Source: Mytilus edulis
Lineage: Eukaryota
Direction of reading: 5' to 3'
DNA length: 64,000 nt
NCBI RefSeq assembly: GCF_963676685.1
Contig: NC_092352.1
Coordinates: 10,292,001-10,356,000, forward strand
Shown here: in pieces, positions 12,951 through 52,500 of the stretch
Numbering within the stretch: the stretch's first letter is position 1
How the letters are laid out: every line of letters begins with the position of its first letter
Translations under genes and position numbers: made by a program
The notes under the pieces: generated by a model
What the model was told of the DNA's origin: nothing
Databases searched by the model: none
What the model saw: only the letters and a program-made list of their open reading frames with translations

Positions 12951-15069
12951 AAGGTCTTGATTTCCACAAGAGAACGGAAAAATGGATTGCTGCACGGACG
13001 CATTACTAAAAAATGTTCTCATGTTGTTCTGTAACACCACTGTTCCCGATTAGGATAGGGCTGAACAGACATGTTTAACCACGCTACACTCTTTATGTGC
13101 CGGTCCCAAGTCAGAAACCTTTAGTTTGTTTTTCGTAAACTGTTTTGTTATAAATTAGATCGCTAGCTTTCTCAAATGATATTCTTTCATATTTTGCACG
13201 TCGAGGCCTTTTCTAATCAATTATACGGATTGGTTTTTTTTCTAATTTTTGAAGGCCATACGGTTGCATATATATATAGTTGCTTACATTTGTACATCAA
13301 TTTTATTGGAAATTTGGTGGATACACTTTCGTCTCAGGCGAGACAAAAGCCAGTAAAATGAAACACGGTTAACACTAAAATAATAATATAATAGATAACA
13401 AGCCGGATAAACTGCACACAATAAGCAATTATATATACCGTATAAATTTAAGAAATTCAATGCTCGCATGCAGTTACTAATAACAAACCTAACGGTACTT
13501 AACCGGTTGAGAAGAAATGCTGTACAAAAGCATACTATCATACTGAAGACACTGACTTTGTTTTGAAACTGTAATGCACTTAAGATAGATTCACATACAG
13601 TTTGAAATATAATGCTTAAAGCAAAGATTTCAATAGTTCAGTGTTATTAAACTTAATCACAACTAAATCCGTGTATGTAATATTACTAGGACCGTGGGTG
13701 ACTTTATTTTAATTACAAACTTGTAAGGGTAGGCCTTAAAGTCAAGCAGACGATTATTCCGGCCTATACTAGTCATCATGATGGTAGTAAACAACACGAT
13801 GCAATCGAACGTGTACTGATAATCCTTCTAGAGCACAAAAATGTCATCCAACATGTGCTTCTTGTAAGAATAAGTTCATATATAAACTTTTCTTCTTAAA
13901 ACGTTTAATCTCAAGAATATTTTTTAGCTTAATAAAACTTGTTGCCATGCAACCTCATGTAGAGTCTGTCAATTTCTGATTTACTGGAGATTAGCTGAAT
14001 TGGTTTTCATTCAAAATAAAAGTTCAAAAAAAGGGGAAAAGATACAAAAAGGCAAAGAATAAATCAATTAAAAAGAAAAACAAAGACCAAGACTAAAAAA
14101 CAAACTGACGGCAACTATCCAAATCACACCAAACCAAATATCTGAAGCCACGAGCAACCAAAATTTGGGTGTACTCGTTTTCTTCGGAAGGATAAGCAGG
14201 CGGTTTCTCTTCCACTAGCGGTCCTCCTCATGTTATATACACATTACCATTATTTATGATCAATGTAAATGATGTTATGGTCATCTTACAACCATTATTG
14301 ACTAAACTTTGATAGCTGTATCACTGTTGTAAAAGTTTTCGACAGCAGCTTGAAAATAAGAGCAAATACAATATGGCAGAAATGATGCCTTGCAAAAGCA
14401 ACAGGCAACAGTTCTGACTCGATTCTATTTGCCCTTTTTTTCAGTTGCAATTTAAGCTTTTGACTTTGACATTTCGTTTTCCCGTTTTGAATTTTCCTCG
14501 GAGTTCGGTGTTTTTGTTTTTTTTTAATTTTTATTCAAACTTTTGCTAAATATTACCACAATTTGTTTAGAGAAATACTATTACATCCGCAGAAATTTTA
14601 TGTTAACCAGATTTTTTTTACATTAAGCTGTTTGTGGTAATATTTCTTAAAGAACTAACATTTTCAGTTTTGCTGTCATGATGTTGTTTAACTTTGTGCG
14701 ACTTTGTGTTTGTTTTGGAGGATGCCATTCATTAGCGGTCTTTTGTTTGGAACACTATTAAAATGTTTGATATCATTTACTGCATGCATTGAAGCTCTGT
14801 GTATATCTGATCATTAAATAGCATTGCATTCGATTGCCTGTTCTTAAAATTCACGTAAGAAATCTGAGGTGAAGAAGAAATGTAGACCTCTGCATTCAAC
14901 GTCTTTTTAGTGTAGGACGCGTGATTTTATTATTTTTTAATATCATTGTTTTACTTTTGGTTGTATTTGTGATATAGGAAGACCGTCTTTAGAGAGGTAA
15001 GTGGGTTTTTCTGTTAGGTTATCACTTGATTTTAATTGTCTTTGGAGATTTAATGTTTATGGCAGATCT

Positions 15070-15330
15070 TTGAAAGAGGGACGAAAGATACCAGAGGGAC
15101 ATTCAAACTCATAGATCAAAAATAAACTGACGACGCCATGGCTAAAACAGAAAGACAAACAGACATATAATAGTACAATGACACACATAGAAAACTAAAG
15201 AACACGAACCCCCCCCAAAAATTGGGGGTTATCAACTAGGTGCTCCGGAAGGGTAACCATATCCTGCTCCACGTGTGGCACCCGTCGTGACGCTTACAAA
15301 CTCGGTAAATAGTGTATTTCGGTATTCCAC
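15070..15330 (-). mobile_element. SINE-like interspersed repeat (duplicate at 23166-23426; related fragments at ~14030-14230 and ~48140-48230)
   Basis: Shared core ..ttacccttc(c/t)ggagcacct.. occurs at several places in the window. Confidence 0.55.
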
Positions 15331-16257
15331 ATTTGAAAGGCTATGTTTTATTTATATACAAATTTTAAGGGCGATTTAGAACTTGTCTGTATGTTAACCA
15401 ATCTTTTATTAAAGATGTATAAGAAGAAGTGGTAAGAGTGCCAATAAGACAACTCTCCATCCAATTAACATTTAAAACGTCCTTTGTCTTATGTTCGTGT
15501 GTTTTGGATGTGTTGTCCTATTGACACATACCCATAAATATTTGTATTCAAATATAACTGTACTACTTAGTAGTATTAAAAGAATCGGACTGTTGAAGTA
15601 TCGATCTCACACTTTTATAATAAACTGTATTTGCATTGATAAATAGCATTGCATAATTTTCATCAATATAGCATACATTATATTTGTATGTTTCCTTTTC
15701 CAATAGGAGAAGAACATTACACTATAACAAAAAAGAGCAATTATCGCCATCAAAATATTTGCAACAATTCATGATATCATATAAAAGAAATCGATAAACG
15801 ACATAAAAAATAAAATAAAATTTATTCATGTAATAATGCCATAAAATTGTATAACAATGATAAAATCATAAATAAATAATAAATAAAAACTTTAAAAATA
15901 AAGTTATTGATGATAGTTCAATATGACAATACGATATGAATCCAATTTGCAAATATAAGCATTATTAAAGTTCAAATATTGTTCTGTGTAAAAATATAAC
16001 GGCAACTAAAATCTTTAAGTTTGTTGAATGTGCTTTCATATTTCGTTTTACTTTGTCAGTTCCTGTTTCTGACTTCATCAATATTATCAGATTTATATAA
16101 CTAAGCAACAAACGAAAACACACAAAACACTATTCACATTCTTTAAAACAATGACCCTAATGCCTTCACCACTTAATTTAAAATCAAACATAAGTGCTTC
16201 GCAAATTATACTACATGAACTAGGACAACATTAAATTAACTACAAGAATCGATAGAC

Positions 16258-16595
16258 ATACCGAAACGATATAGATGCATTGGTTTTGTGCTTTAGTCAA
16301 TACCGAAACGATATAGGTGCATTGGTTTTGTGCTTTAGTCAATACCGAAACGATATAGATGCATTGGTTTTGTGCTTAAGTCAATACCGAAACGATAAAG
16401 ATGCATTGGTTTCGTGCTTGAGTCAATACCGAAACGATATAGATGCATTGGTTTTGTGCTTTAGTCAATACCGAAACGATATAGATGCATTGGTTTTGTG
16501 CCGGAGTCCATACCGAAACGATATAGATGCATAGGTGTTGTGTCTGAGTCCATACCGATACGATATAGATGCATTGGTTGTGTGCTTGAGTCAAT
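16258..16595. repeat. 42-bp minisatellite, ~8 copies, just downstream of the SMS paralog stop codon (copy 1)
   Basis: Unit taccgaaacgatatagatgcattggttttgtgctttagtcaa. Confidence 0.95.
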
Positions 16596-16682
16596 GTATT
16601 TTCAAAGTAATTGAGAATTCAAAGCGATCAAAATATAACGATTTCATCTCGTTGTTTGAAAATACTAGATCAGCTGTTTATC

Positions 16683-19600
16683 TTATGACAGCAATGAAGA
16701 TATATAGTTCCTGAGTTTTGCACACCGTTGCATTGCTGATTCCAAAATACTTGATGGCCATTCGTATTCATTCGGAACTATTCCATCACAATTTGATTCG
16801 AAAAAATAAAAGACTGGGAACCATTTCTTAAGTCTGCTCTGGTCTCTTGTCATTAAAGTTTTATTGTTGGCTAGGATGTGGTGATATTGGAATAACCGTG
16901 ATGTAATATAAAAGGCTACTATCACATCTAAGGTATAGTGTCCGTGTCCTGCTAAAATGAAGATCATACCAGACAATCCCACAATCCACACCAGTATGTG
17001 TAGAAATATCCATCTTTTTGGTGTATCTAGAATAAACAAAAATAAAATTATGACGTTGTCAGCGTAAACATATTGGGTTGTGATACTGCAAATTTAAGTA
17101 AATAATGAAAGAATTTTGGAATATGGTTTTTGTTGAAAAATTAATTCATAGGAATTTGGCTCTATCTTGGACTTTTCATGTGAACAAAACAAATAGTTAA
17201 AACTATAGAAGTGTAGGAAAAAATTGTGATCATTTTCCATAATTATATGGAATACCCGACAGTTAGTATAATCTGCAGAAGGGACTCTATATTAAGAAAA
17301 TGTTTTCAACTGGTCATTTAGATACTGAAGATGTTCAAGTTCAGTATGGCTGATTATATAAGTCGTTGATTTCTGTTTCTTTCGCTTTTCATGTCGTTGG
17401 ATTTTTTTTCAAATTTAAATCATAATTTAATGAGTTCCATATGATATTACGAAGTAGCTGTAACGGAATATAAATAACATTTACTTACATTCATTAATGA
17501 GAAGAATAAGAGTTGTTATGGTAACTGTATGTCCACTGAACATGTAATCTCCACATGTTTTTAATCCGGAGACTTTCATTCCCATTCCGGAATAAATCTC
17601 TAGAGCTCTTGAAAATCGTTCCCAGCCGTTTTTAAATACCTAAAAATACAATTCAAAATTGCATTTGCAGTTACTAAATCTTTTTTAAATTGTTACATTT
17701 AAGTTCAACATTATGAAATATAAATAATGTTGAGTTGATGATCAAACTTTAACACAATGAATTTTTACAAACAATGTATTATGGTTGTAATTATTCTAAA
17801 TTCAAAGCTGTATACATATCTATATAAGAAAAAGTTTGTAGAAAGGTAAGCCAGTTGACGCTATACAGAGGTGGTTTCTGGGTGTTTGTAGAAAGGTAAG
17901 CCAGTTGAAGCTATACAGAGGTGGTTTCTGGGTGTTTGTAGAAAGGTAAGCCAGTTGACGCTATACAGAGGTGGTTTCTGGGTGTTTGCAGAAAGGTAAG
18001 CCAGTTGACGCTATACAGAGGTGGTTTCTGGGTGTTTGTAGAAAGGTAAGCCAGTTGACGCTATACAGAGGTGGTTTCTGGGTGTTTGTAGAAAGGTAAG
18101 CCAGTTGACGCTATACAGAGGTGGTTTCTGGGTGTTTGTAGAAAGGTAAGCCAGTTGACGCTATACAGAGATGGTTTCTGGGTGTTTGTAGAAAGGTAAG
18201 CCAGTTGACGCTATATAAAGGTGGTTTCTGGGTGTTTGTAGAAAGGTAAGCCCGTTGACGCTATACAGAGGTGGTTTGTGGGTGTTTGTAGAAAGGTAAG
18301 CCCGTTGACGCTATACAGAGGTGGTTTCTGGGTGTTTTCTTCCATTTGTTTGTGTCTTACAATGCAAAGAAAATAAATATGTATACCACAAATCTTATTG
18401 TAAACAATTTTTAATCTTGTCAAATCGTTTTGAGTGTTTCATAATTAAATTTGGCATCGTTTCGAGTACTACTTCGGGTTCTGTAATCCTGGCCACTGGG
18501 CGTTCGGCCTCCAACTCTAATCAATCGACAATGCGGTGCATATTCTCTGTGACGAAAATTTAATGTTGACTGGTTATATCTTGATAGCTGTTTTATTTTG
18601 AATAAATTGCGTTTAAAAATTGTGACATACCAGTTTCTCACAGTTGAAATTTTCTTGAGGCATAGGTAAGGAGGTAACGATAACACATATACTGCGAAAT
18701 AAAAATATGGAGGCAGCAATGACAAACATTCTTCTGAGTAATATAAACCTGAAAATATACAAATAGTTTTATTATCAAATTATACATTATGACTACATAT
18801 CCTAAGTACTATAGATTACATGAAATCTCCAAGCATGCAATAATTATCTTGCAGCTTAGGATTAGAACTCTTATTATTAGGTTTTGGAGATCAGTCTGAC
18901 TTTATTCTGACAATGTATGTTTGAAGATCGCGTGCCAAATCCAAATCCGAAAATGAACTTTTACTTTAATATAGACTTGAACATTTCAATAACGTGACTT
19001 TTAGATATCTAGAGAGAAAGCAGGTGAACACATACCAAAACTTCTCTGACTTTACTAAAAAAAAACAGCTTTGGTACTAATTCTAGGTGGTATTGTTTCG
19101 TCTTCTTTGTTCTTGCTTAATGTGACTCAAATGAAATTCATTACTATTACCATAATTACTTTCCAAGGGACGATTTATGTACAGCTACACGGAATAAGAC
19201 ACTTGGTTTTTTTCACTAGTTGTTGTTCTTGGTTTTTCCCTATAGCTGCCCGCTACTGTGGGTGGTCTCATGTCTTTACTTTGTGTCTTTTTGTTGTTGG
19301 GATGTACAAGTACCCATCCACTGTGTTTTTGTGAGATGTATTTCTAAGAGTGTTTATCTGAAGAGTTAAGCCTTTTTTCAACAGATTTTTAGTTTGTTCT
19401 TAAAGTTTTCAACCTTCTATATAGCTACGCCATTTGGTCTTAGGTTGAGAGTTACCTCATTGGTAATCCTACCATAGCTTCTTAATTTTATTTTTTACTT
19501 TGTTTTCCTTGTTGGTGACATAAACCATGCATAACGAAGCCGTAAATTGACTTCTAAATATTTTATTTTTATTAATTTTCTGCTTATAAATGAAAAGATA

Positions 19601-20255
19601 TTCTCTGCAAACTACTGGGTTTTGCTTGCTTTGTTCATCTGAACATATATATATATATATATACGTACCTATATTTGTGAAACACTAATATTATAAAATA
19701 TGTAATAAATCCAGCTAAAATAACTCCCTCCGTCACTTTGTATGCCCATGGTACATAATTTATGCTATCTAACATCACGTCGGGTAATGGGCGATATTGC
19801 TTTTTGTCAGGCATGCGCTCTTGTGCAACTATGATAGCAAAACTAGTAACAAAATGTACAAAAAATGTATAGACAATGCTGACACCGGTCTTCCATACTT
19901 CTTGATTTATTTTCCGTTTTGGCCTATAGTTATGTTTTTCGTCGTCAGAGGAATCTATAATATCTATCATGTAGGAACTTTCTGAGGAAGAGGATGAATG
20001 ACAGTCATTATGATAATTTGGAAATTGTAACCGTGAATTCTGTCCACTCTGAAGGTCTTGGATTGCAAACAGTAGTCTTTTGATATCACCTAAAGCTGAT
20101 ATTTTAAGCTGATATAAATCCTTTTCGGTCAATGTTAGAAGAACACGCCCGTCGATTCTATTCTCATCACATAGTAGTTTCTGGTATTCTTGCAATCCGT
20201 TCTCACATAAAAATTGTTTCACTCTTTCACAGTTCCATAATAAAGGGTCCGACAT
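16683..20255 (-). CDS. Divergent SAM-domain sphingomyelin synthase-related (SMSr/SAMD8-like) paralog, copy 1, 399 aa; exons 20255-19669, 18748-18631, 17639-17489, 17026-16683
   Basis: SAM domain ([31 protein letters not shown]), [28 protein letters not shown] and HGHYTLD. GT-AG introns in phases 2, 0, 1; open 1,200-nt spliced CDS. Confidence 0.9.
17834..18337. repeat. 50-bp minisatellite, ~10 copies, intronic (copy 1)
   Basis: Unit tttgtagaaaggtaagccagttgacgctatacagaggtggtttctgggtg. Confidence 0.95.
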
Positions 20256-23200
20256 TTTTTCTTATGAAATCTGAAATCAAATGACAAAATAAATGCAACG
20301 AAAAGATAATTATTATACCCATGACATGCTCGTATCAAGATATGGAATCAAATTAATTCACGTCAATATTTCATGTCAAAACAGAATCTGTATTTCAAAT
20401 TATAATGTTATAACATACATTATACAAATTATGTGATTACTTTGTCATTCACACGAAAAATGACTTCTATTTGAATTCTTCCTTTACAATTTTGAAAAAA
20501 AAGATCAGATAATGAAACCAGATTCGCTTAATGTATGATAAATATATATTTAATGAAATCTACGTTTTTCAAAAACGATCAATTGTTGACCGGTATGATT
20601 CTACTGGTCATGTTTGTTATATCCCTCAGCTTGTTTTACGCGAGTCCCGTGAGGTATATAAAAAAAAATATTTTCTGAGCTATTGGGGCATTTTAGGTCG
20701 AATTGCGAAGAAAAATTTCCTCCAGGGTTTCGAGGTTGAACGAAAATATTCATACCGGCATAGTGTTCCCAATTTTGAACTACAATATAATTATGCAACA
20801 CCAAATCGTTCCTTTAAAATCACTTGTAAATTTAAAAAAGAACAAAAAATGAATAAGAAAATAATGCCTTTTTAAAAAAGAATGAAAATAATATAGTGAT
20901 TTCGTTACCTGTTAACACTTCTGGACGATTATATCAACGTTCTCACTATTAAACTTAATGATAATTAGTCATTATATTATTTAAAAGTCCGTTCTGAAAT
21001 GTGACCTTCGTGTAACAGTGTAGTACTATAGTAACAAAACAAATAATCAGAGAAATCGCTATCGCTAATATAAAGGAAACGCTGAAATTGTTTCTTACTA
21101 TTGGATTTTTAAGTGATGAATCAATCTAAAAAAATGATTACAGATTGATGAAGTTATCGGTTTTTTTCCTTTATAAAAAATTTGAATGACAATATTTTAG
21201 TAACCGTTGAACCTTCAAAAAGAGTTTTTCGTAAACTGTTTTGTTATAAATTAGATCGCTAGCTTTCTCAAATGATATTCTTTCATATTTTGCACGTCGA
21301 GGCCTTTTCTAATCAATTATACGGATTGGTTTTTTTTCTAATTTTTGAAGGCCATACGGTTGCATATATATATAGTTGCTTACATTTGTACATCAATTTT
21401 ATTGGAAATTTGGTGGATACACTTTCGTCTCAGGCGAGACAAAAGCCAGTAAAATGAAACACGGTTAACACTAAAATAATAATATAATAGATAACAAGCC
21501 GGATAAACTGCACACAATAAGCAATTATATATACCGTATAAATTTAAGAAATTCAATGCTCGCATGCAGTTACTAATAACAAACCTAACGGTACTTAACC
21601 GGTTGAGAAGAAATGCTGTACAAAAGCATACTATCATACTGAAGACACTGACTTTGTTTTGAAACTGTAATGCACTTAAGATAGATTCACATACAGTTTG
21701 AAATATAATGCTTAAAGCAAAGATTTCAATAGTTCAGTGTTATTAAACTTAATCACAACTAAATCCGTGTATGTAATATTACTAGGACCGTGGGTGACTT
21801 TATTTTAATTACAAACTTGTAAGGGTAGGCCTTAAAGTCAAGCAGACGATTATTCCGGCCTATACTAGTCATCATGATGGTAGTAAACAACACGATGCAA
21901 TCGAACGTGTACTGATAATCCTTCTAGAGCACAAAAATGTCATCCAACATGTGCTTCTTGTAAGAATAAGTTCATATATAAACTTTTCTTCTTAAAACGT
22001 TTAATCTCAAGAATATTTTTTAGCTTAATAAAACTTGTTGCCATGCAACCTCATGTAGAGTCTGTCAATTTCTGATTTACTGGAGATTAGCTGAATTGGT
22101 TTTCATTCAAAATAAAAGTTCAAAAAAAGGGGAAAAGATACAAAAAGGCAAAGAATAAATCAATTAAAAAGAAAAACAAAGACCAAGACTAAAAAACAAA
22201 CTGACGGCAACTATCCAAATCACACCAAACCAAATATCTGAAGCCACGAGCAACCAAAATTTGGGTGTACTCGTTTTCTTCGGAAGGATAAGCAGGCGGT
22301 TTCTCTTCCACTAGCGGTCCTCCTCATGTTATATACACATTACCATTATTTATGATCAATGTAAATGATGTTATGGTCATCTTACAACCATTATTGACTA
22401 AACTTTGATAGCTGTATCACTGTTGTAAAAGTTTTCGACAGCAGCTTGAAAATAAGAGCAAATACAATATGGCAGAAATGATGCCTTGCAAAAGCAACAG
22501 GCAACAGTTCTGACTCGATTCTATTTGCCCTTTTTTTCAGTTGCAATTTAAGCTTTTGACTTTGACATTTCGTTTTCCCGTTTTGAATTTTCCTCGGAGT
22601 TCGGTGTTTTTGTTTTTTTTTAATTTTTATTCAAACTTTTGCTAAATATTACCACAATTTGTTTAGAGAAATACTATTACATCCGCAGAAATTTTATGTT
22701 AACCAGATTTTTTTTACATTAAGCTGTTTGTGGTAATATTTCTTAAAGAACTAACATTTTCAGTTTTGCTGTCATGATGTTGTTTAACTTTGTGCGACTT
22801 TGTGTTTGTTTTGGAGGATGCCATTCATTAGCGGTCTTTTGTTTGGAACACTATTAAAATGTTTGATATCATTTACTGCATGCATTGAAGCTCTGTGTAT
22901 ATCTGATCATTAAATAGCATTGCATTCGATTGCCTGTTCTTAAAATTCACGTAAGAAATCTGAGGTGAAGAAGAAATGTAGACCTCTGCATTCAACGTCT
23001 TTTTAGTGTAGGACGCGTGATTTTATTATTTTTTAATATCATTGTTTTACTTTTGGTTGTATTTGTGATATAGGAAGACCGTCTTTAGAGAGGTAAGTGG
23101 GTTTTTCTGTTAGGTTATCACTTGATTTTAATTGTCTTTGGAGATTTAATGTTTATGGCAGATCTTTGAAAGAGGGACGAAAGATACCAGAGGGACATTC

Positions 23201-24353
23201 AAACTCATAGATCAAAAATAAACTGACGACGCCATGGCTAAAACAGAAAGACAAACAGACATATAATAGTACAATGACACACATAGAAAACTAAAGAACA
23301 CGAACCCCCCCCAAAAATTGGGGGTTATCAACTAGGTGCTCCGGAAGGGTAACCATATCCTGCTCCACGTGTGGCACCCGTCGTGACGCTTACAAACTCG
23401 GTAAATAGTGTATTTCGGTATTCCACATTTGAAAGGCTATGTTTTATTTATATACAAATTTTAAGGGCGATTTAGAACTTGTCTGTATGTTAACCAATCT
23501 TTTATTAAAGATGTATAAGAAGAAGTGGTAAGAGTGCCAATAAGACAACTCTCCATCCAATTAACATTTAAAACGTCCTTTGTCTTATGTTCGTGTGTTT
23601 TGGATGTGTTGTCCTATTGACACATACCCATAAATATTTGTATTCAAATATAACTGTACTACTTAGTAGTATTAAAAGAATCGGACTGTTGAAGTATCGA
23701 TCTCACACTTTTATAATAAACTGTATTTGCATTGATAAATAGCATTGCATAATTTTCATCAATATAGCATACATTATATTTGTATGTTTCCTTTTCCAAT
23801 AGGAGAAGAACATTACACTATAACAAAAAAGAGCAATTATCGCCATCAAAATATTTGCAACAATTCATGATATCATATAAAAGAAATCGATAAACGACAT
23901 AAAAAATAAAATAAAATTTATTCATGTAATAATGCCATAAAATTGTATAACAATGATAAAATCATAAATAAATAATAAATAAAAACTTTAAAAATAAAGT
24001 TATTGATGATAGTTCAATATGACAATACGATATGAATCCAATTTGCAAATATAAGCATTATTAAAGTTCAAATATTGTTCTGTGTAAAAATATAACGGCA
24101 ACTAAAATCTTTAAGTTTGTTGAATGTGCTTTCATATTTCGTTTTACTTTGTCAGTTCCTGTTTCTGACTTCATCAATATTATCAGATTTATATAACTAA
24201 GCAACAAACGAAAACACACAAAACACTATTCACATTCTTTAAAACAATGACCCTAATGCCTTCACCACTTAATTTAAAATCAAACATAAGTGCTTCGCAA
24301 ATTATACTACATGAACTAGGACAACATTAAATTAACTACAAGAATCGATAGAC

Positions 24354-24691
24354 ATACCGAAACGATATAGATGCATTGGTTTTGTGCTTTAGTCAATACC
24401 GAAACGATATAGGTGCATTGGTTTTGTGCTTTAGTCAATACCGAAACGATATAGATGCATTGGTTTTGTGCTTAAGTCAATACCGAAACGATAAAGATGC
24501 ATTGGTTTCGTGCTTGAGTCAATACCGAAACGATATAGATGCATTGGTTTTGTGCTTTAGTCAATACCGAAACGATATAGATGCATTGGTTTTGTGCCGG
24601 AGTCCATACCGAAACGATATAGATGCATAGGTGTTGTGTCTGAGTCCATACCGATACGATATAGATGCATTGGTTGTGTGCTTGAGTCAAT
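24354..24691. repeat. 42-bp minisatellite (copy 2)
   Basis: Matches 16258-16595 at offset +8096. Confidence 0.95.
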
Positions 24692-24778
24692 GTATTTTCA
24701 AAGTAATTGAGAATTCAAAGCGATCAAAATATAACGATTTCATCTCGTTGTTTGAAAATACTAGATCAGCTGTTTATC

Positions 24779-27700
24779 TTATGACAGCAATGAAGATATA
24801 TAGTTCCTGAGTTTTGCACACCGTTGCATTGCTGATTCCAAAATACTTGATGGCCATTCGTATTCATTCGGAACTATTCCATCACAATTTGATTCGAAAA
24901 AATAAAAGACTGGGAACCATTTCTTAAGTCTGCTCTGGTCTCTTGTCATTAAAGTTTTATTGTTGGCTAGGATGTGGTGATATTGGAATAACCGTGATGT
25001 AATATAAAAGGCTACTATCACATCTAAGGTATAGTGTCCGTGTCCTGCTAAAATGAAGATCATACCAGACAATCCCACAATCCACACCAGTATGTGTAGA
25101 AATATCCATCTTTTTGGTGTATCTAGAATAAACAAAAATAAAATTATGACGTTGTCAGCGTAAACATATTGGGTTGTGATACTGCAAATTTAAGTAAATA
25201 ATGAAAGAATTTTGGAATATGGTTTTTGTTGAAAAATTAATTCATAGGAATTTGGCTCTATCTTGGACTTTTCATGTGAACAAAACAAATAGTTAAAACT
25301 ATAGAAGTGTAGGAAAAAATTGTGATCATTTTCCATAATTATATGGAATACCCGACAGTTAGTATAATCTGCAGAAGGGACTCTATATTAAGAAAATGTT
25401 TTCAACTGGTCATTTAGATACTGAAGATGTTCAAGTTCAGTATGGCTGATTATATAAGTCGTTGATTTCTGTTTCTTTCGCTTTTCATGTCGTTGGATTT
25501 TTTTTCAAATTTAAATCATAATTTAATGAGTTCCATATGATATTACGAAGTAGCTGTAACGGAATATAAATAACATTTACTTACATTCATTAATGAGAAG
25601 AATAAGAGTTGTTATGGTAACTGTATGTCCACTGAACATGTAATCTCCACATGTTTTTAATCCGGAGACTTTCATTCCCATTCCGGAATAAATCTCTAGA
25701 GCTCTTGAAAATCGTTCCCAGCCGTTTTTAAATACCTAAAAATACAATTCAAAATTGCATTTGCAGTTACTAAATCTTTTTTAAATTGTTACATTTAAGT
25801 TCAACATTATGAAATATAAATAATGTTGAGTTGATGATCAAACTTTAACACAATGAATTTTTACAAACAATGTATTATGGTTGTAATTATTCTAAATTCA
25901 AAGCTGTATACATATCTATATAAGAAAAAGTTTGTAGAAAGGTAAGCCAGTTGACGCTATACAGAGGTGGTTTCTGGGTGTTTGTAGAAAGGTAAGCCAG
26001 TTGAAGCTATACAGAGGTGGTTTCTGGGTGTTTGTAGAAAGGTAAGCCAGTTGACGCTATACAGAGGTGGTTTCTGGGTGTTTGCAGAAAGGTAAGCCAG
26101 TTGACGCTATACAGAGGTGGTTTCTGGGTGTTTGTAGAAAGGTAAGCCAGTTGACGCTATACAGAGGTGGTTTCTGGGTGTTTGTAGAAAGGTAAGCCAG
26201 TTGACGCTATACAGAGGTGGTTTCTGGGTGTTTGTAGAAAGGTAAGCCAGTTGACGCTATACAGAGATGGTTTCTGGGTGTTTGTAGAAAGGTAAGCCAG
26301 TTGACGCTATATAAAGGTGGTTTCTGGGTGTTTGTAGAAAGGTAAGCCCGTTGACGCTATACAGAGGTGGTTTGTGGGTGTTTGTAGAAAGGTAAGCCCG
26401 TTGACGCTATACAGAGGTGGTTTCTGGGTGTTTTCTTCCATTTGTTTGTGTCTTACAATGCAAAGAAAATAAATATGTATACCACAAATCTTATTGTAAA
26501 CAATTTTTAATCTTGTCAAATCGTTTTGAGTGTTTCATAATTAAATTTGGCATCGTTTCGAGTACTACTTCGGGTTCTGTAATCCTGGCCACTGGGCGTT
26601 CGGCCTCCAACTCTAATCAATCGACAATGCGGTGCATATTCTCTGTGACGAAAATTTAATGTTGACTGGTTATATCTTGATAGCTGTTTTATTTTGAATA
26701 AATTGCGTTTAAAAATTGTGACATACCAGTTTCTCACAGTTGAAATTTTCTTGAGGCATAGGTAAGGAGGTAACGATAACACATATACTGCGAAATAAAA
26801 ATATGGAGGCAGCAATGACAAACATTCTTCTGAGTAATATAAACCTGAAAATATACAAATAGTTTTATTATCAAATTATACATTATGACTACATATCCTA
26901 AGTACTATAGATTACATGAAATCTCCAAGCATGCAATAATTATCTTGCAGCTTAGGATTAGAACTCTTATTATTAGGTTTTGGAGATCAGTCTGACTTTA
27001 TTCTGACAATGTATGTTTGAAGATCGCGTGCCAAATCCAAATCCGAAAATGAACTTTTACTTTAATATAGACTTGAACATTTCAATAACGTGACTTTTAG
27101 ATATCTAGAGAGAAAGCAGGTGAACACATACCAAAACTTCTCTGACTTTACTAAAAAAAAACAGCTTTGGTACTAATTCTAGGTGGTATTGTTTCGTCTT
27201 CTTTGTTCTTGCTTAATGTGACTCAAATGAAATTCATTACTATTACCATAATTACTTTCCAAGGGACGATTTATGTACAGCTACACGGAATAAGACACTT
27301 GGTTTTTTTCACTAGTTGTTGTTCTTGGTTTTTCCCTATAGCTGCCCGCTACTGTGGGTGGTCTCATGTCTTTACTTTGTGTCTTTTTGTTGTTGGGATG
27401 TACAAGTACCCATCCACTGTGTTTTTGTGAGATGTATTTCTAAGAGTGTTTATCTGAAGAGTTAAGCCTTTTTTCAACAGATTTTTAGTTTGTTCTTAAA
27501 GTTTTCAACCTTCTATATAGCTACGCCATTTGGTCTTAGGTTGAGAGTTACCTCATTGGTAATCCTACCATAGCTTCTTAATTTTATTTTTTACTTTGTT
27601 TTCCTTGTTGGTGACATAAACCATGCATAACGAAGCCGTAAATTGACTTCTAAATATTTTATTTTTATTAATTTTCTGCTTATAAATGAAAAGATATTCT

Positions 27701-28351
27701 CTGCAAACTACTGGGTTTTGCTTGCTTTGTTCATCTGAACATATATATATATATATATACGTACCTATATTTGTGAAACACTAATATTATAAAATATGTA
27801 ATAAATCCAGCTAAAATAACTCCCTCCGTCACTTTGTATGCCCATGGTACATAATTTATGCTATCTAACATCACGTCGGGTAATGGGCGATATTGCTTTT
27901 TGTCAGGCATGCGCTCTTGTGCAACTATGATAGCAAAACTAGTAACAAAATGTACAAAAAATGTATAGACAATGCTGACACCGGTCTTCCATACTTCTTG
28001 ATTTATTTTCCGTTTTGGCCTATAGTTATGTTTTTCGTCGTCAGAGGAATCTATAATATCTATCATGTAGGAACTTTCTGAGGAAGAGGATGAATGACAG
28101 TCATTATGATAATTTGGAAATTGTAACCGTGAATTCTGTCCACTCTGAAGGTCTTGGATTGCAAACAGTAGTCTTTTGATATCACCTAAAGCTGATATTT
28201 TAAGCTGATATAAATCCTTTTCGGTCAATGTTAGAAGAACACGCCCGTCGATTCTATTCTCATCACATAGTAGTTTCTGGTATTCTTGCAATCCGTTCTC
28301 ACATAAAAATTGTTTCACTCTTTCACAGTTCCATAATAAAGGGTCCGACAT
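24779..28351 (-). CDS. Divergent SMSr/SAMD8-like paralog, copy 2, 399 aa; exons 28351-27765, 26844-26727, 25735-25585, 25122-24779
   Basis: Same sequence and splice sites as copy 1 at offset +8096. Confidence 0.9.
25930..26433. repeat. 50-bp minisatellite (copy 2)
   Basis: Matches 17834-18337 at offset +8096. Confidence 0.95.
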
Positions 28352-31300
28352 TTTTTCTTATGAAATCTGAAATCAAATGACAAAATAAATGCAACGAAAA
28401 GATAATTATTATACCCATGACATGCTCGTATCAAGATATGGAATCAAATTAATTCACGTCAATATTTCATGTCAAAACAGAATCTGTATTTCAAATTATA
28501 ATGTTATAACATACATTATACAAATTATGTGATTACTTTGTCATTCACACGAAAAATGACTTCTATTTGAATTCTTCCTTTACAATTTTGAAAAAAAAGA
28601 TCAGATAATGAAACCAGATTCGCTTAATGTATGATAAATATATATTTAATGAAATCTACGTTTTTCAAAAACGATCAATTGTTGACCGGTATGATTCTAC
28701 TGGTCATGTTTGTTATATCCCTCAGCTTGTTTTACGCGAGTCCCGTGAGGTATATAAAAAAAAATATTTTCTGAGCTATTGGGGCATTTTAGGTCGAATT
28801 GCGAAGAAAAATTTCCTCCAGGGTTTCGAGGTTGAACGAAAATATTCATACCGGCATAGTGTTCCCAATTTTGAACTACAATATAATTATGCAACACCAA
28901 ATCGTTCCTTTAAAATCACTTGTAAATTTAAAAAAGAACAAAAAATGAATAAGAAAATAATGCCTTTTTAAAAAAGAATGAAAATAATATAGTGATTTCG
29001 TTACCTGTTAACACTTCTGGACGATTATATCAACGTTCTCACTATTAAACTTAATGATAATTAGTCATTATATTATTTAAAAGTCCGTTCTGAAATGTGA
29101 CCTTCGTGTAACAGTGTAGTACTATAGTAACAAAACAAATAATCAGAGAAATCGCTATCGCTAATATAAAGGAAACGCTGAAATTGTTTCTTACTATTGG
29201 ATTTTTAAGTGATGAATCAATCTAAAAAAATGATTACAGATTGATGAAGTTATCGGTTTTTTTCCTTTATAAAAAATTTGAATGACAATATTTTAGTAAC
29301 CGTTGAACCTTCAAAAAGAGTATCCCAACTCGTTCAACGTACCAAGCGGTCATTGTTTAACAAATATATATTGCAGTTGTATATGATATGATAATGAAAA
29401 CTTAACGGAGAGAAAGAATACATATTACCGAATTCTGAAGTTCTCGTAGATCTTTTGGTCAAGTAATGAATTATTTTACATTGGGCTTGTCTGTTATCGC
29501 TACCGTTATAATATTTGTTTTCTATTGACCATAACTAAAGAAGGTTAGAATATGGGTTGATATAATGTATTCAAACTAAGTCACGTTTTAATTCAAACTA
29601 CCCGGTATATAAAAATAGAATAACTGCATGCATATATCGATCAAACCTTTAAATTTCGTTCTGTGAAAATATGACTTTGTTTACGGTATTACTTTTGAAA
29701 TGAGATTAATGCAATTTGCAGAAGAAAAAAAAATCATGCAGAGAAAATAAAAAGTCAATAAATTTCAACTGATTTAAAAGTGTAAAATGTTTTGGGGATA
29801 TTTCATGTTCATTTCACTTGAAAAGATCGATTACAAACAGTATAAACATGTATATGAGCGGTCAGTTATATTACTTATTAATTCCGGACTGTAACTTGTC
29901 ATTGACGCGATGGCAATGTATTTCATATCACAGTGTATGTATGTCTTTAAGGTTAATCAGAATATACAAGAAGGTCCGTTTGAACACCAAAAAGATCAAT
30001 AAAAAAAAAAAAGAAGGTCCGTCAGGAAGGCTGTTATAAGAATATCTTTACAAAAGAATCGCAAATTCAAGTTTATTATACATTTCTGTTATATTTAAAA
30101 ATTCGAATCTAAATTAAAAAAAAATCAGTATTAAAACTTACGTTTGAACTTTTCAATGTCAAGATGAACTACTATAACCTTTCTTTGAAAAGAATTAAAT
30201 ACCAGGACGCTACTGTTGGTCACAGATAACAATTGACAGTAATTAAATCTTAAGCCTTTAATTAGATTCTTGTCGTGTCCTGTTTTTTTTATAGTTATTT
30301 TAATCAGGATTAAGACAATACATACATAATCTCATAAAATTATATTTTTAATCAAGGAACAAAAACACAATAATATAAATAATAAAATATAAATGTGATT
30401 GTCACTCACCATCTGTCAACCAGTGAGTCTGGGAGGTCACTCAAGCGACCTTAGTGACGAGCATCACTACATTATGTAATGCCTTAATTTAGACCTTTTT
30501 ACCACAGTACTGTTGATGCAGACCTCATCTTTATAAATCTGATCAACTATTTATGAACAAAAATTAAATTACTGAAACAATATTCAAATTTATTAAAGTT
30601 ATAAATGTGAAAGTCAGTTATTTTGCCGTTCACACATGCATGAATCATATTGTACTTTATAGTCTGTAACTATGGAATTTTGGTTTTATGAAACATATAG
30701 TCACTTTCACTATGTAAGGAATTCTTTAAAAATCATTTTAAAACGTTTAGATAAATGGTATTTTTCAGGCAACATGTCAATTTCTAAAAGGTACAAACAT
30801 AAATGCGTATCTGTTCAATAAAACGTTCTACCATCAGAGAACTGTTTTTGGGTTTATTGCACCTCAATGCAAAACATGAATTCAGGTGGCCGAATTATTG
30901 GCATGGTAAACATGAATTATACGCAAAGCAGTTGTGTCTTTATAAAATTCACACGCAAATATCTTCAACTCAATCTCGAACTTGAAATATTAGTACAGAT
31001 GATTTTTGGATGTAACAGCCTTTATCTTAGGTTTGCTCTTCAGTAGATTTTTGATATTATTATTGTCATCTTAAAGAAATATTCCTCTTTCTTAATCAAT
31101 CAGTAAAATCAACAACAACAAAAAAAAAACCACTTTTTAAATCCTTTCAAAACACCTTATATGCATAATATTACTCACCGATTGCATCTAAAATTTCTCA
31201 ACTTCAAATACGTCTTCAACTTGCACTTTTAACATTAACAACATTCACTTCTTTTTATACGGAATGTAAAAGTCAAGGACCGAAATACGGTCAGACTTAA

Positions 31301-32185
31301 TCCATTATCCGGTAACACAATTCAAGTTAAAACAGTTAATGGAATTAACCGAGTATTATACCCACTAGTCGATGGACAATACAGAGAGATTTTTTTTATG
31401 AATGGAGCCCTTTGCCCTTTGATACAATTCGGAACTATAAAAAAAAACCATAATAGATCTTTGTCCACTCGTGTCCTATCTTGTTTGAACCCCCTGGCAA
31501 ATATGTTATTTCCCTGTAAAATGAAAATCCATACAAAATTGGATTAATGTTAAAAATCATAGACTCTTTAATAAAATAGGCACAAGAACCGAGGTACACT
31601 TAGTTTATTTAAATTGCATTATTTAAGTGCTCATACTTATGTCTACACCTATAGACCTCTGAGCTACATCAGCTATACGATACACTCTAACCACAGGAAC
31701 ACTTTTTATGGATGCATATGCACTCAGCTTACAAATAAATATGGTTCTAGTTGTGATGAAATTTTGATCTTCCCCTATATTTCAGTCACTAGAATACTCA
31801 TCTAATCACGGATGCAGGAATGCTAGTCCAGTTTAGTGGACAGTGCTTGTTTCAGTTTGCATTGTTTTAAATCGTCTGCCAGACAGCTGAATAAAAAACG
31901 CATTATCAAATACAAAACAAACCCCGCTTACTGTGATTTCGATGCCATGTAGTGTTTTTAAAATCAACAGCCTACTGAAGAAACCAAAGTAAAATGGTAA
32001 GTCATTTATGTATGTTACTATTTATGAGCTCACAGATTTTATCCTTGCTATACACGGAGATATCGGCTGGATCCCAATTCAGTATCGGCGTTTGATCAAT
32101 ATGGCGAGATACTGGAATACTCATTCAATAAGACAGCAGTCGCATCACCAAATTTGCATTCAATATGGACTACTTTTCTACAGTG

Positions 32186-46556: not shown

Positions 46557-49500
46557 TCACAGCTTCTTTTTGTTCTTAGAACTAGCTGCAATGTCTGATT
46601 TCAATCCAATAAACATGTGTTTAACTTGTTCCCAACTAGGCAGCGGCCATTCAAACTCATTAGGTACAATACCATCACATCTAGACTCGAAGAACGTGAA
46701 TAAAGGAAACCAGATACGTGTTCTCTTCTTATCACGTAACATAAGTGAACGATTGTTGGCAAGAGTGTGGTAATAAAGAAACATACGGGAAGTGATGTAG
46801 AAAGCAACAAACACATCTATGGAGTAATGCTCATGGGCTGCTAGAATGAAGAATAGTGCAAACATATTGGCTACCCATGCTGAAGTATGGAGATAATACA
46901 TCTTTCTTGGCGTGTCTGAAAAAAACAGAAAAAATGATATCAAATATTTGACATACAAATGTATAGATAAACCTCATATGATAACTTATTGTTATTTTAC
47001 AAAATAATCAGTAGTATAAATAAGATAAGCACAAGGAAAACAATAACATAAATATATCAAAGCGTGATAGCACTAAAGCATTTGCTGTATATTTTACAGA
47101 AAATGTCAGAATCAATATCTAGATTGTTTCTTTTCAACTGTTCCAATAAGAAATATCTTGCATCGTAAACCAGTAATGTTATGTAACCTTTAGCAGAATA
47201 AAAATTCTCAATAAAAGGCCTAGGGTTAACTATTAAACTTCCATTTAAATGTTTTGTTTCAGGAAAGTTCAATCAAACTTACTTAATTTTCAATACATAA
47301 GTCAAGCAAACACATAATTTTACACGGTTTTGAAAGAACTGTAGAATAAAAACTGTGTGCACTCTATTTCACTTAAACAAAATGGCATTTACAAGATGAC
47401 TATAAAAGCAAATACTTTTAAAACAGCAGCTTTGCAGCAAAATTAATATAAACTAGAAGAGCTCTGGCTGCAAAATAAGACTGAAAAACTTAGTAAGAGT
47501 TAATAATTCAGTGAAAAGATTAAACCACAACAACACAAACTCAACCTGTAATTTTATCAATAAATCAAAAAAATAATAACTTACATTCAGTTATGAGAAA
47601 GTTGAGCATAGTAACAAAGACTGTATGTCCACTAAACATGTAATCTCCACAAGTCCTAACACCTGACAGTGTCATACCTAGTCCTGTCCAGATCTCAAAA
47701 GTTCTACGTAGTTTGGTCCATATATCTCCATACAGCTTAAATAAATGGAATAAAAATCATGAAATAATTATTTGGTAGCAGATTATTTGGTGAAATTTTC
47801 AAAAACCTTTAATACAAATACAAATATTTTTTTGGCACAAACACAATTACAATAATTGCCAAAAATCTAATATGCTTTATTCTATATATAATACAAAAAT
47901 ACACTCATAACCAGCATACTACCTCCATTCAGTTTACATGATAACTTACTTTTTTCATTATGTTTATAACCACACCACAAATATATTCCCAAAATTTAAT
48001 TATTATCTCAGATATTTTATAAAATTTACATTCCCCCAAAAATGCAAACAGAAGGTAATCTTCAGTGTTATGAATTTGTAATTGTTTACAAGAAAAAGAA
48101 TTCAAAACATTAATATTGGAACATAAAATGGTAAATTAGGAACTAATTACCCTTCTGGAGCACCTGAGTTCATCCCAGGTATTTGGTTAGGTTCTACATG
48201 TATTTACTCAGTCTACTTTTCTATGAAATGTTTTGTTTTCATTGGAGGATAAAATTTTGTCATCATTGCAGGATATTGCAGGATATAGTTTTGTTATCAT
48301 TGGAGGTATAGTTTTGTTACCATTGCAGGATATAGTTTTGTTATCATTGGATGATCTAGTTTTGTTATCATTGCAGGATCTAGTTTTGTTATCATTGGAG
48401 GATCTAGTTTTGTTATCATTGGATGATCTAGTTTTGTTATCATTGGATGATCTAGTTTTGTTATCATTGGAGGATATAGTTTTGTTATCATTGGAGGATA
48501 TAGTTTTGTTATCATTGGATGATCTAGTTTTGTTATCATTGGAGGATATAGTTTTGTTATCATTGGAGGATATAGTTTTGTTATCATTGGATGATCTAGT
48601 TTTGTTATCATTGGAGGATATAGTTTTGTTACCAATGCAGGATATAGTTTTGTTATCATTGGATGATCTAGTTTTGTTATCATTGGATGATCTAGTTTTG
48701 TTATCATTGGAGGATCTAGTTTTGTTATTATTGGAGGATCTAGTTTTGTTATCATTGGATGATCTAGTTTTGTTATCATTGGAGGATATAGTTTTGTTAT
48801 CATTCGATGATCTAGTTTTGTTATCATTGCAGGATATAGTTTTGTTATCATTGGAGGATATAGTTTTGTTATCATTGCAGGATATAGTTTTGTTATCATT
48901 GGAGGATATAGTTTTGTTATCATTGCAGGATATAGTTTTGTTATCATTGGAGGATATAGATTTGTTATCATTGGATGATCTAGTTTTGTTATCATTGGAG
49001 GATATAGTTTTGTTATCATTGGATGATCTAGTTATCTAGTTTTGTTATCATTGGATGATCTAGTTTTGTTATCATTGGAGGATCTAGTTTTGTTATCATT
49101 GGATGATCTAGTTTTGTTATCATTGGAGGATATAGTTTTGTTATCATTGGATGATCTAGTTTTGTTATCATTGCAGGATATAGTTTTTTTATCATTGGAG
49201 GATATAGTTTTGTTATCATTGCAGGATATAGTTTTGTTATCATTGGAGGATATAGTTTTGTTATAATTGGAGGATATAGTTTTGTTATCATTGGATGATC
49301 TAGTTTTGTTATCATTGGAGGATATAGTTTTGTTATCATTGGAGGATATAGTTTTGTTATCATTGGAGGATATAGTTTTGTTATCATTCGATGATCTAGT
49401 TTTGTTATCATTGCAGGATATAGTTTTGTTATCATTGGATGATCTAGTTTTGTTATCATTGGAGGATATAGTTTTGTTATCATTGGATGATCTAGTTTTG

Positions 49501-52500
49501 TTATCATTGGAGGATATAGTTTTGTTACCAATGCAGGATATAGTTTTGTTATCATTGGATGATCTAGTTTTGTTATCATTGGATGATCTAGTTTTGTTAT
49601 CATTGGATGATCTAGTTTTGTTATCATTGGAGGATCTAGTTTTGTTATTATTGGAGGATCTAGTTTTGTTATCATTGGAGGATATAGTTTTGTTATCATT
49701 CGATGATCTAGTTTTGTTATCATTGCAGGATATAGTTTTGTTATCATTGGAGGATATAGTTTTGTTATCATTGGAGGATATAGTTTTGTTATCATTGGAT
49801 GATCTAGTTTTGTTATCATTGGAGGATATAGTTTTGTTATCATTGGAGGATATAGTTTTGTTATCATTGGATGATCTAGTTTTGTTATCATTCGATGATC
49901 TAGTTTTGTTATCATTGCAGGATATAGTTTTGTTATCATTGGAGGATATAGTTTTGTTATCATTGCAGGATATAGTTTTGTTATCATTGGAGGATATAGT
50001 TTTGTTATCATTGCAGGATATAGTTTTGTTATCATTGGAGGATATAGATTTGTTATCATTGGATGATCTAGTTTTGTTATCATTGGAGGATATAGTTTTG
50101 TTATCATTGGATGATCTAGTTATCTAGTTTTGTTATCATTGGATGATCTAGTTTTGTTATCATTGGAGGATCTAGTTTTGTTATCATTGGATGATCTAGT
50201 TTTGTTATCATTGGAGGATATAGTTTTGTTATCATTGGATGATCTAGTTTTGTTATCATTGCAGGATATAGTTTTTTTATCATTGGAGGATATAGTTTTG
50301 TTATCATTGCAGGATATAGTTTTGTTATCATTGGAGGATATAGTTTTGTTATAATTGGAGGATATAGTTTTGTTATCATTGGATGATCTAGTTTTGTTAT
50401 CATTGGAGGATATAGTTTTGTTATCATTGGAGGATATAGTTTTGTTATCATTGGAGGATATAGTTTTGTTATCATTCGATGATCTAGTTTTGTTATCATT
50501 GCAGGATATAGTTTTGTTATCATTGGATGATCTAGTTTTGTTATCATTGGAGGATATAGTTTTGTTATCATTGGATGATCTAGTTTTGTTATCATTGGAG
50601 GATATAGTTTTGTTACCAATGCAGGATCTAGTTTTGTTATCATTGGATGATCTAGTTTTGTTATCATTGGATGATCTAGTTTTGTTATCATTGGAGGATA
50701 TAGTTTTGTTATCATTGGAGGATATAGTTTTGTTATCATTGGATGATCTAGTTTTGTTATCATTGGAGGATATAGTTTTGTTATCATTGGAGGATATAGT
50801 TTTGTTATCATTGGATGATCTAGTTTTGTTATCATTCGATGATCTAGTTTTGTTATCATTGCAGGATATAGTTTTGTTATCATTGGAGGATATAGTTTTG
50901 TTATCATTGCAGGATATAGTTTTGTTATCATTGGAGGATATAGTTTTGTTATCATTGCAGGATATAGTTTTGTTATCATTGGAGGATATAGATTTGTTAT
51001 CATTGGATGATCTAGTTTTGTTATCATTGGAGGATATAGTTTTGTTATCATTGGATGATCTAGTTATCTAGTTTTGTTATCATTGGATGATCTAGTTTTG
51101 TTATCATTGGAGGATCTAGTTTTGTTATCATTGGATGATCTAGTTTTGTTATCATTGGAGGATATAGTTTTGTTATCATTGGATGATCTAGTTTTGTTAT
51201 CATTGCAGGATATAGTTTTTTTATCATTGGAGGATATAGTTTTGTTATCATTGCAGGATATAGTTTTGTTATCATTGGAGGATATAGTTTTGTTATAATT
51301 GGAGGATATAGTTTTGTTATCATTGGATGATCTAGTTTTGTTATCATTGGAGGATATAGTTTTGTTATCATTGGAGGATATAGTTTTGTTATCATTGGAG
51401 GATATAGTTTTGTTATCATTCGATGATCTAGTTTTGTTATCATTGCAGGATATAGTTTTGTTATCATTGGATGATCTAGTTTTGTTATCATTGGAGGATA
51501 TAGTTTTGTTATCATTGGATGATCTAGTTTTGTTATCATTGGAGGATATAGTTTTGTTACCAATGCAGGATATAGTTTTGTTATCATTGGATGATCTAGT
51601 TTTGTTATCATTGGATGATCTAGTTTTGTTATCATTGGATGATCTAGTTTTGTTATCATTGGAGGATCTAGTTTTGTTATTATTGGAGGATCTAGTTTTG
51701 TTATCATTGGATGATCTAGTTTTGTTATCATTGGAGGATATAGTTTTGTTATCATTCGATGATCTAGTTTTGTTATCATTGCAGGATATAGTTTTGTTAT
51801 CATTGGAGGATATAGTTTTGTTATCATTGCAGGATATAGTTTTGTTATCATTGGAGGATATAGTTTTGTTATCATTGCAGGATATAGTTTTGTTATCATT
51901 GGAGGATATAGATTTGTTATCATTGGATGATCTAGTTTTGTTATCATTGGAGGATATAGTTTTGTTATCATTGGATGATCTAGTTATCTAGTTTTGTTAT
52001 CATTGGATGATCTAGTTTTGTTATCATTGGAGGATCTAGTTTTGTTATCATTGGATGATCTAGTTTTGTTATCATTGGAGGATATAGTTTTGTTATCATT
52101 GGATGATCTAGTTTTGTTATCATTGCAGGATATAGTTTTTTTATCATTGGAGGATATAGTTTTGTTATCATTGCAGGATATAGTTTTGTTATCATTGGAG
52201 GATATAGTTTTGTTATAATTGGAGGATATAGTTTTGTTATCATTGGATGATCTAGTTTTGTTATCATTGGAGGATATAGTTTTGTTATCATTGGAGGATA
52301 TAGTTTTGTTATCATTGGAGGATATAGTTTTGTTATCATTCGATGATCTAGTTTTGTTATCATTGCAGGATATAGTTTTGTTATCATTGGATGATCTAGT
52401 TTTGTTATCATTGGAGGATATAGTTTTGTTATCATTGGATGATCTAGTTTTGTTATCATTGGAGGATATAGTTTTGTTACCAATGCAGGATATAGTTTTG

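Follow-up and report, generated by a model that had tools for sequence, protein, structure and literature searches.

Human SMSr (SAMD8) is the closest described relative of the gene reported here. Its catalytic residues form a pentad of E205-H301 / D295-H344-D348 (PMC13133130), and Table 2 of PMC11663969 lists E205D, C293A, G294A, D295A, H301A, H344A and D348E as substitutions that abolish synthesis of ceramide phosphoethanolamine (CPE). The Glu that precedes the His of motif D4 (E343 in SMSr, E271 in SMS2) lies outside the pentad. In purified SMS2, the E271D substitution lowered only the CPE synthase activity, left the sphingomyelin (SM) synthase and phosphatidylethanolamine-specific phospholipase C (PE-PLC) activities unchanged and raised the phosphatidylcholine-specific phospholipase C (PC-PLC) activity (PMC11663969). 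In the trypanosome sphingolipid synthases (SLS), Ser beside a catalytic His predicts inositol phosphorylceramide as the product and Phe predicts SM and ethanolamine phosphorylceramide (PMC11796370). An earlier note, made from the letters of the DNA described here, had held that the residue just before the second catalytic His governs the choice of head group, and for SMS2 and the trypanosome SLS this is borne out by the two studies cited. Here, we examined a stretch of 64,000 nucleotides from the blue mussel Mytilus edulis (assembly GCF_963676685.1, contig NC_092352.1, positions 10,292,001 to 10,356,000; hereafter the window), which carries a divergent SMSr gene with Gly at this position (G-type) and, next to it, a canonical SMSr gene with Glu (E-type).

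Our preferred reading is that the G-type genes constitute a constrained subfamily derived from SMSr, with an altered specificity and with their differences falling on the head-group selectivity site; we would place its probability at roughly 0.6. On this evidence of residues and descent, a G-type enzyme probably makes or cleaves a lipid other than that of the standard enzyme.

The gene lies on the minus strand and was read from the sequence as four coding exons with GT..AG introns throughout, giving a product of 399 amino acids followed by a TAA stop codon. Two copies that are 100% identical stand in the window at an offset of 8,096 bp, and all open reading frames at 16-29 kb appear twice. The exons of the second copy (copy 2), with the non-coding exon that precedes them, are as follows:

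24779..25122, minus strand: exon 4, coding part; TAA at 24779-24781, HGHYTLD at 25022-25042, codon of G314 at 25037-25039
25585..25735, minus strand: exon 3; D3 motif with the pentad Asp and His
26727..26844, minus strand: exon 2; D2 motif and TSLPMP (P224)
27765..28366, minus strand: exon 1; acceptor ttcAG followed by ATTTC at 28366, ATG at 28351-28349, donor GTACGT after 27765
about 31179..31322, minus strand: non-coding exon 0 of the 5' untranslated region (UTR); GTGAGT donor after 31179, 5' end approximate, at least 144 nt

Exon 1 encodes the SAM domain, the first two transmembrane (TM) helices TM1-TM2, AQERMPD (codon of Q145 at 27917-27919), PLPD and the pentad Glu within KVTEG. For the searches the exons were used singly, and they were joined by coordinates only for local alignments and trees, with the database proteins P0038 and P0156 as full-length stand-ins. 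Pfam recognised SAM_1 in exon 1 (2.2e-15, residues 7-68 of the exon); exons 3 and 4 match PAP2_C at scores beyond the curated cut-off. The four SMS motifs are also present: D1 (YRPLPDV) and the basic D2, ahead of the TSL..P loop, in the translations of exons 1 and 2, and D3 (C-G-D-x3-S-G-H-T) and D4 (HYTLDV) with the catalytic His, His and Asp. In the alignment to structure 8IJR, the SAM domain corresponds to residues 12-96, E205, H344 and D348 are kept, H174 is replaced by Gln and E343 by Gly; the Glu of KVTEG aligns with E205, and the Asp of CGD corresponds to D295 by its position relative to H301. A spliced protein of 399 amino acids with a SAM domain and the catalytic His/His/Asp had been predicted from the letters, and the exon model, Pfam and the structural alignment agree with it.

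The canonical gene with which this protein was compared occupies the right-hand part of the window:

46560..55213, minus strand: canonical E-type SMSr; exons 55213-54545, about 53803-53687, 47738-47586 and about 46913-46560

Its product is 97-100% identical to the M. trossulus protein P0271 and reads HDRVPD (54689-54706), TSLSVP (53708-53725), SGHT (47622-47633) and HEHYSID (46815-46835). The G-type gene reads QERMPD, TSLPMP and HGHYTLD in place of HDRVPD, TSLSVP and HEHYSID, as the earlier note had reported. When 13 G-type proteins were set against 186 E-type proteins, exactly three columns were fixed at 100% versus 100%, namely H>Q (145), S>P (224) and E>G (314), and these are the very substitutions to which the note had drawn attention; T>C at position 217 was nearly fixed in the same scan. 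From cnidarians to vertebrates, the Glu, His and Ser of canonical SMSr are invariant (186/186), and every G-type protein (13/13) has switched all three.

One could suppose that a G-type protein has the same function as canonical SMSr, that the substitutions are tolerated or compensate one another, and that the paralogs differ only in where or when they are expressed. The residue before the catalytic His does vary in other SMSr-like proteins of invertebrates, being Gln in a rotifer, Ala and Gly in an isopod and Lys in Artemia, which would favour such tolerance. However, fixation of the 186/186 versus 13/13 kind is what one would expect if function had changed and constraint had followed, and the stem branch of the G-type clade is long, so that we hold equivalence to be very unlikely.

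Gly at this position is not peculiar to molluscs. An exhaustive HMMER search with exon 4 gave, for the best 150 cluster representatives, a residue before the His of Glu in 124, Gly in 17, Gln in four and Ala in two, single cases of Lys, Arg, Cys and Asp, and one protein without a match; these counts are approximate, because one single case came from an additional, off-target hit of the regular expression. A profile of SMS-like proteins that have no SAM domain collected an almost wholly arthropod set (insects, spiders, Daphnia), in which 111 of 117 new proteins have Gly before the catalytic His. These SMS2-like proteins retain the His of VH[DE]RVPD and, like Ciona SMS2, show LP in the TSL loop and HYT in motif D4. 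Under the automatic name 'phosphatidylcholine:ceramide cholinephosphotransferase 2-like' (P0372-P0488), they read Gly in almost all cases, often as R-G-H or H-G-H, at a position that is Asp in vertebrate SMS1 and Glu in SMS2. Gly was likewise seen in a protein of the nematode Trichuris and in one from an isopod; Ciona SMS2 reads TTLPVPG and HDHYTID. By these counts, the Gly on which the earlier note had built its case for a novel enzyme is not unusual for the family.

Within the SMSr lineage the distribution is narrow. A word search with a full-length oyster-type G protein, followed by a search with a G-type profile, recovered G-type proteins from Mytilus (groups G1-G4) and oysters only, with a gap of about 140 bits before the next matches, which are canonical SMSr proteins reading VH[DE]RVPD, TSLSVP and HEHY from scallops, other bivalves, gastropods, octopus, a chiton, annelids, nemerteans, corals, arthropods and vertebrates. 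Among the best 120 matches, E-type and no G-type proteins came from scallops, gastropods, a cephalopod, a chiton and corals, in searches that reach annotated or assembled proteins only.

The trees place the G-types in a single clade. In a quick posterior mean site frequency (PMSF) tree, the 13 G-types formed one clade on a long stem (Shimodaira-Hasegawa-like approximate likelihood ratio test, SH-aLRT, 99). With the three signature residues masked, an LG+G4 tree supported the G-type clade at 100/100, a pteriomorph group of scallop E, mussel E, oyster E and G-type proteins at 99/99, and a group of G-types with mussel E and oyster E proteins, scallops excluded, at 86/81. The arthropod Gly-types fall in the outgroup with Ciona SMS2, and their Gly is therefore convergent. 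Oyster G proteins emerge from among the mussel G paralogs, which implies that two or more G lineages already existed when mussels and oysters split. These placements indicate that the G-type arose within Pteriomorphia, is derived from SMSr and, as far as the searched proteins go, is confined to mussels and oysters. The claim that the gene is an SMSr duplicate thus holds, as it nests in pteriomorph SMSr at 99/99. The picture of a lone divergent paralog has to be given up, as it is one of four G-type groups in the genome and has oyster orthologues. RefSeq already annotates the gene as 'SMSr 1-like', and we found no paper on the subfamily or its signature.

The G-type gene and its canonical neighbour share the same layout of four coding exons, which shows that they are related by duplication at the DNA level. 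A retrocopy was rejected, as the introns are the same as those of the neighbouring canonical gene; a bacterial or contaminant origin was also rejected.

Whether the paralog might prove to be unexpressed was raised in the earlier note. Spliced RNA contigs of 1,485 nt (run X18, a PacBio RNA library) and 736 nt (X16) extend over all four coding exons, and a pseudogene or an unexpressed gene was rejected. The RNA pieces lie at 24705-25122, 25585-25731 (+4), 26723 (+4)-26846 and 27773-28367, with a further one at 27773-28045, and they extend the 3' UTR of copy 2 to at least 24705. Two joints with CT..AC ends coincide with modelled introns 2 and 3, namely 25122>25585 and 25731>26723, the latter cut by +4 and equal to 25735>26727; the joint of intron 1 is absent from the RNA listing, where it was dropped at a TA repeat, and the letter counts agree with the model. 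The X18 contig carries 144 extra letters beyond 28367, of which the first 30 match 31180-31209 with one mismatch (0 such matches expected by chance), and exon 0 accordingly splices to the ttcAG acceptor at 28366.

The coding sequence is under constraint. Between runs X4, X16 and X18, nine coding variants are listed and every one is synonymous (9/9); the listing holds the best-supported differences only and is a sample, not a dN/dS estimate. Such a count is far from the neutral expectation and denotes purifying selection. The M. trossulus orthologue in RefSeq, P0156 ('SMSr 1-like', 399 aa), shares the exon junctions, and 7 of its 399 residues are different.

The residues needed for chemistry have also been retained. 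Across seven G-type proteins, the positions required for CPE synthesis, including C-G-D and S-G-H-T, are invariant, which means that catalysis is probably kept, and the G-type enzyme is predicted to be catalytically competent. The changed positions have states known from elsewhere in the family: S>P, together with S>T in G1, matches the SMS1/2 state and E>G that of the arthropod SMS2-like proteins, and H>Q is specific to the clade. A hint of what Gly allows comes from a planthopper, in which sphingomyelins were the main sphingolipid class measured and the 'SMS' transcript best matches a Fopius enzyme (PMC5270407). The Fopius protein reads HGHYTVD, which by analogy hints, but no more than that, at Gly-type enzymes accepting choline.

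A sequence of events consistent with these observations can be proposed. Canonical SMSr would have been duplicated at the DNA level inside the pteriomorph bivalves and later expanded to four paralog groups in Mytilus, with the SAM domain, the six-helix core, D1-D4 and all of the listed CPE-critical residues retained. From the known topology of the family, the three changed positions would face the lumen. The donor glycerophospholipid would still be cleaved at its phosphodiester or phosphonodiester bond, releasing diacylglycerol, and the carboxylate that SMS2 uses in a second, Glu-dependent step of CPE synthesis would be lost. With that carboxylate gone, a head group other than the canonical phosphoethanolamine may be passed to ceramide, or to water. 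Both activity and specificity are here what we infer from the residues.

Transfer to water leads to a different proposal, in which the G-type enzyme has given up head-group transfer and acts in the endoplasmic reticulum (ER) as a producer of diacylglycerol, of the phospholipase C or phosphatidate phosphatase type, or as a ceramide sensor, roles that have been put forward for the mammalian SMSr. The SMS2 E271D mutant, described as having lost CPE synthase, kept PE-PLC and gained PC-PLC activity (PMC11663969), is in keeping with this, as is the SAM domain retained in the G-type proteins, a domain which in SMSr mediates oligomerisation and ER residency (PMC5264588). Against this stand S>P and S>T, which bring the G-type closer to the states of SMS1/2-type synthases, and the existence of four conserved paralog groups, which are many for a single regulatory role. 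We consider this proposal unlikely, though less so than plain equivalence.

Several points weigh against an altered-specificity subfamily itself. The effect of Gly is extrapolated from a Glu-to-Asp mutant of a different paralog, SMS2, and no biochemical study of any Gly-type enzyme was found in the searchable literature. The long branches in the G-type clade might stem from constraint having been relaxed over a portion of the protein. In mammals, moreover, SMSr itself acts chiefly in hydrolysis or regulation and has no more than trace CPE synthase activity (PMC7988496), and to view the entire subfamily as transferases may therefore be mistaken.

Searches of the 1.37-Gb assembly with exon 4 and PF14360 found six SMS-type loci: the two identical copies in the window, the E-type neighbour and three further G-type paralogs on other chromosomes, for a tally of five G-type loci against one E-type and four G-type paralog groups (G1-G4). 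Gly is therefore the majority state in this genome. No SMS1/2-type locus was found in these searches. The loci elsewhere (L004-L006), which read HGHYSID, HGHYTLD and HGHYSID, are:

C3:80026544-80026816: further G-type locus (L004)
C14:21898247-21898522: further G-type locus (L005)
C10:16686857-16687141: further G-type locus (L006)

They match the M. galloprovincialis, M. edulis and M. trossulus proteins P0157, P0274-P0276 and P0177. One M. galloprovincialis model, P0154 (452 aa), is chimeric, with exons 2-4 of canonical SMSr fused via intergenic sequence to most of the G-type gene; a run of 14 residues in it is identical to that of the window, which points to a Mytilus, probably of the edulis/galloprovincialis group. 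The genome also contains a gene of the phosphoenolpyruvate (PEP) mutase family. Two PEP-mutase-family loci were seen, at C6:41860360-41861518 and C50:23197-24352, with equal exon spacing and near-equal scores; C50 is a small contig and possibly a haplotig of the chromosome 6 locus that was left uncollapsed.

The lipid to which these genes might be tied is ceramide aminoethylphosphonate (CAEP), a major membrane lipid of molluscs and cnidarians. The earlier note had observed that the enzyme transferring its head group had not been identified, and the searchable literature indeed names no CAEP synthase and leaves the last step unassigned. It had gone on to suggest that the G-type might be such an enzyme, so that the paralogs would act as synthases of CAEP or N-methyl-CAEP by moving aminoethylphosphonate (AEP) from a phosphono-glycerolipid to ceramide. 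Of the lipids measured in haemocytes of M. galloprovincialis, CAEP makes up 29 mol% (PMC9174665). A PEP-mutase-family gene is present in the genome, the SMS-type loci are five of the G-type and one of the E-type, our searches found no SMS1/2-type gene, and the G-type pocket has converged on the SMS1/2-type, the bulk sphingolipid synthases of the family.

The phyletic distribution speaks against the suggestion. CAEP is produced by bivalves in general, gastropods, cephalopods, sea anemones and hydrocorals, and occurs as a scallop sphingolipid (PMC9174665, PMC9537335), whereas our searches met the G-type in mussels and oysters alone, and nothing but E-type SMSr in scallops, gastropods, cephalopods and cnidarians. 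As CAEP is made in lineages in which no G-type was found and the clade is younger, CAEP synthesis must predate the clade and does not require it. A match between the family phylogeny and CAEP content, which the earlier note had proposed as a check, is thus missing. Trypanosoma brucei fed AEP makes AEP-ceramide with no dedicated enzyme (PMC5648825). AEP and phosphoethanolamine share the aminoethyl group, and removal of a carboxylate would be no obvious adaptation to AEP. Gly is, besides, the norm in the arthropod SMS2-like proteins (111/117), and arthropods are not known for CAEP.

With no G-type found in the other CAEP makers, the idea survives only as an added bulk synthase specific to mussels and oysters. 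In that form, the SMSr duplicates rebuilt with Q/P/G would serve as bulk, Golgi-type synthases of CAEP or an N-methylated variant in these animals alongside an older enzyme elsewhere; if true, the gene family would hold the first identified CAEP synthases. We judge the general suggestion improbable and the narrower one equally so; a CAEP role is possible and lacks specific support. The neofunctionalised duplicate proposed in the note accordingly stands in part: altered specificity is the best reading of the gene, and the link to CAEP fails on its distribution. The search for a CAEP synthase in Mytilus is nevertheless narrowed to six PAP2_C loci, one canonical and five G-type. The G-type itself emerges as an old and constrained subfamily, with one member (G1) confirmed as expressed and with differences concentrated at the head-group site.

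The span 16683-28351 had been taken as one gene. Its two ends fall instead in exon 4 of copy 1 and in exon 1 of copy 2 of the same gene, the two copies are 100% identical, and a non-coding exon 0 lies further upstream. The exons of copy 1 and the two units of the duplication are:

16683..17026, minus strand: copy 1 exon 4 with the stop codon; HGHYTLD at 16926-16946, codon of G314 at 16941-16943
17489..17639, minus strand: copy 1 exon 3; D3 motif at 17526-17555
18631..18748, minus strand: copy 1 exon 2; TSLPMP at 18658-18675, codon of P224 at 18664-18666
19669..20255, minus strand: copy 1 exon 1, coding part; codon of Q145 at 19821-19823, identical to copy 2
13128..21223, no strand assigned: duplication unit 1, 8,096 bp; exact self-match of 8,098 bp at offset 8,096
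21224..29321, no strand assigned: duplication unit 2, head-to-tail and 100% identical to unit 1

A motif search placed QERMPD of copy 1 at 19806-19823. In the self-comparison, identity in the flanks of the duplication is at chance level. The right edge of unit 2 lies inside intron 0 of the gene and is bridged by an X1 DNA contig at 28835-29442 with 0 differences. Exon 0 is outside the duplicated unit, and hence only copy 2 stands behind the promoter-bearing exon.

A perfect duplication of 8.1 kb is either an assembly artefact or extremely recent. A real and very recent tandem event would be consistent with the clean head-to-tail junction, which has 2 bp of microhomology, and with the contig depth of run X1, at about 20-25 within the unit against about 9-10 for single contigs of the right flank; these depths come from assembled contigs, and contig depth is not copy number. 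In that flank, however, two overlapping contigs together reach about 19 in places, a value that agrees with haplotype splitting and not with half the copy number, and in run X4 the depth is equal inside and outside the unit. Identity is 100% over 8,096 bp that include two minisatellite arrays (50-bp and 42-bp), there is a single 5' exon for the two copies, and the assembly is broken by a gap 478 bp to the left. The copy-to-copy junction is not among the loose ends listed for the stretch on which contigs were placed, which does not include 21223/21224. On balance we lean slightly towards an artefact, with a real event still a serious contender, and the locus should not be counted as two genes.

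The assembly gap, of 134 N, is at 12516-12649, 478 bp left of the start of the duplication. A 50-bp tandem array fills 17684-18433 inside intron 2 of the G-type gene and a 42-bp array occupies 16132-16721, just downstream of the 3' end of the gene and overlapping it; each recurs at +8096. In two DNA runs, the summed contig depth over a short element at 27373-27417 (intron 1 of copy 2; 19277-19321 in copy 1) reaches about 20,000, and loose ends are numerous to its left and right; the element is a very high-copy interspersed repeat. In the canonical gene, a minisatellite of about 5.3 kb (48200-53520) fills most of intron 2, gives a strong GC skew at 48-54 kb and translates as ...SSNDNKT... or ...PMITKL... 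repeats. The last 66 bp of canonical exon 2 and its donor are repeated just downstream, the sequence at 53708-53725 being found again at 53642-53659, and a third partial copy lies near 53520; these repeats offer in-frame alternative donors.

Compared with canonical SMSr/SAMD8, as known from the human structures 8IJQ, 8IJR and 8W9Y, the G-type shares the SAM domain, the six-TM PAP2_C core, D1-D4, the H-H-D triad, the E/D pentad and the layout of four coding exons. It differs in having Gln for His174, Pro for the Ser of TSLSVP and Gly for Glu343, in the long stem branch of its clade and in being multi-copy in mussels. With the SMS1/SMS2-type it has in common LP[VM]P for LSVP and, in the window paralog, HYT for HYS, and with the arthropod SMS2-like proteins the Gly just before the catalytic His. 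Unlike the G-type, however, the SMS1/2-type proteins have no SAM domain, keep the His of VH[DE]RVPD and stand in the outgroup of the tree, which argues for convergence and not for membership. Gly is the normal state in the large and biochemically uncharacterised arthropod group, and a comparison of Glu, Asp and Gly at this site would be relevant to both groups. The trypanosome enzymes TbSLS1-4, compared here by description, resemble the G-type as recently amplified paralogs in which a signature residue beside the catalytic His predicts the product. They belong to a distant branch of the superfamily, have no SAM domain and use other residues, and by analogy they offer the best precedent for a switch of specificity at such a site.

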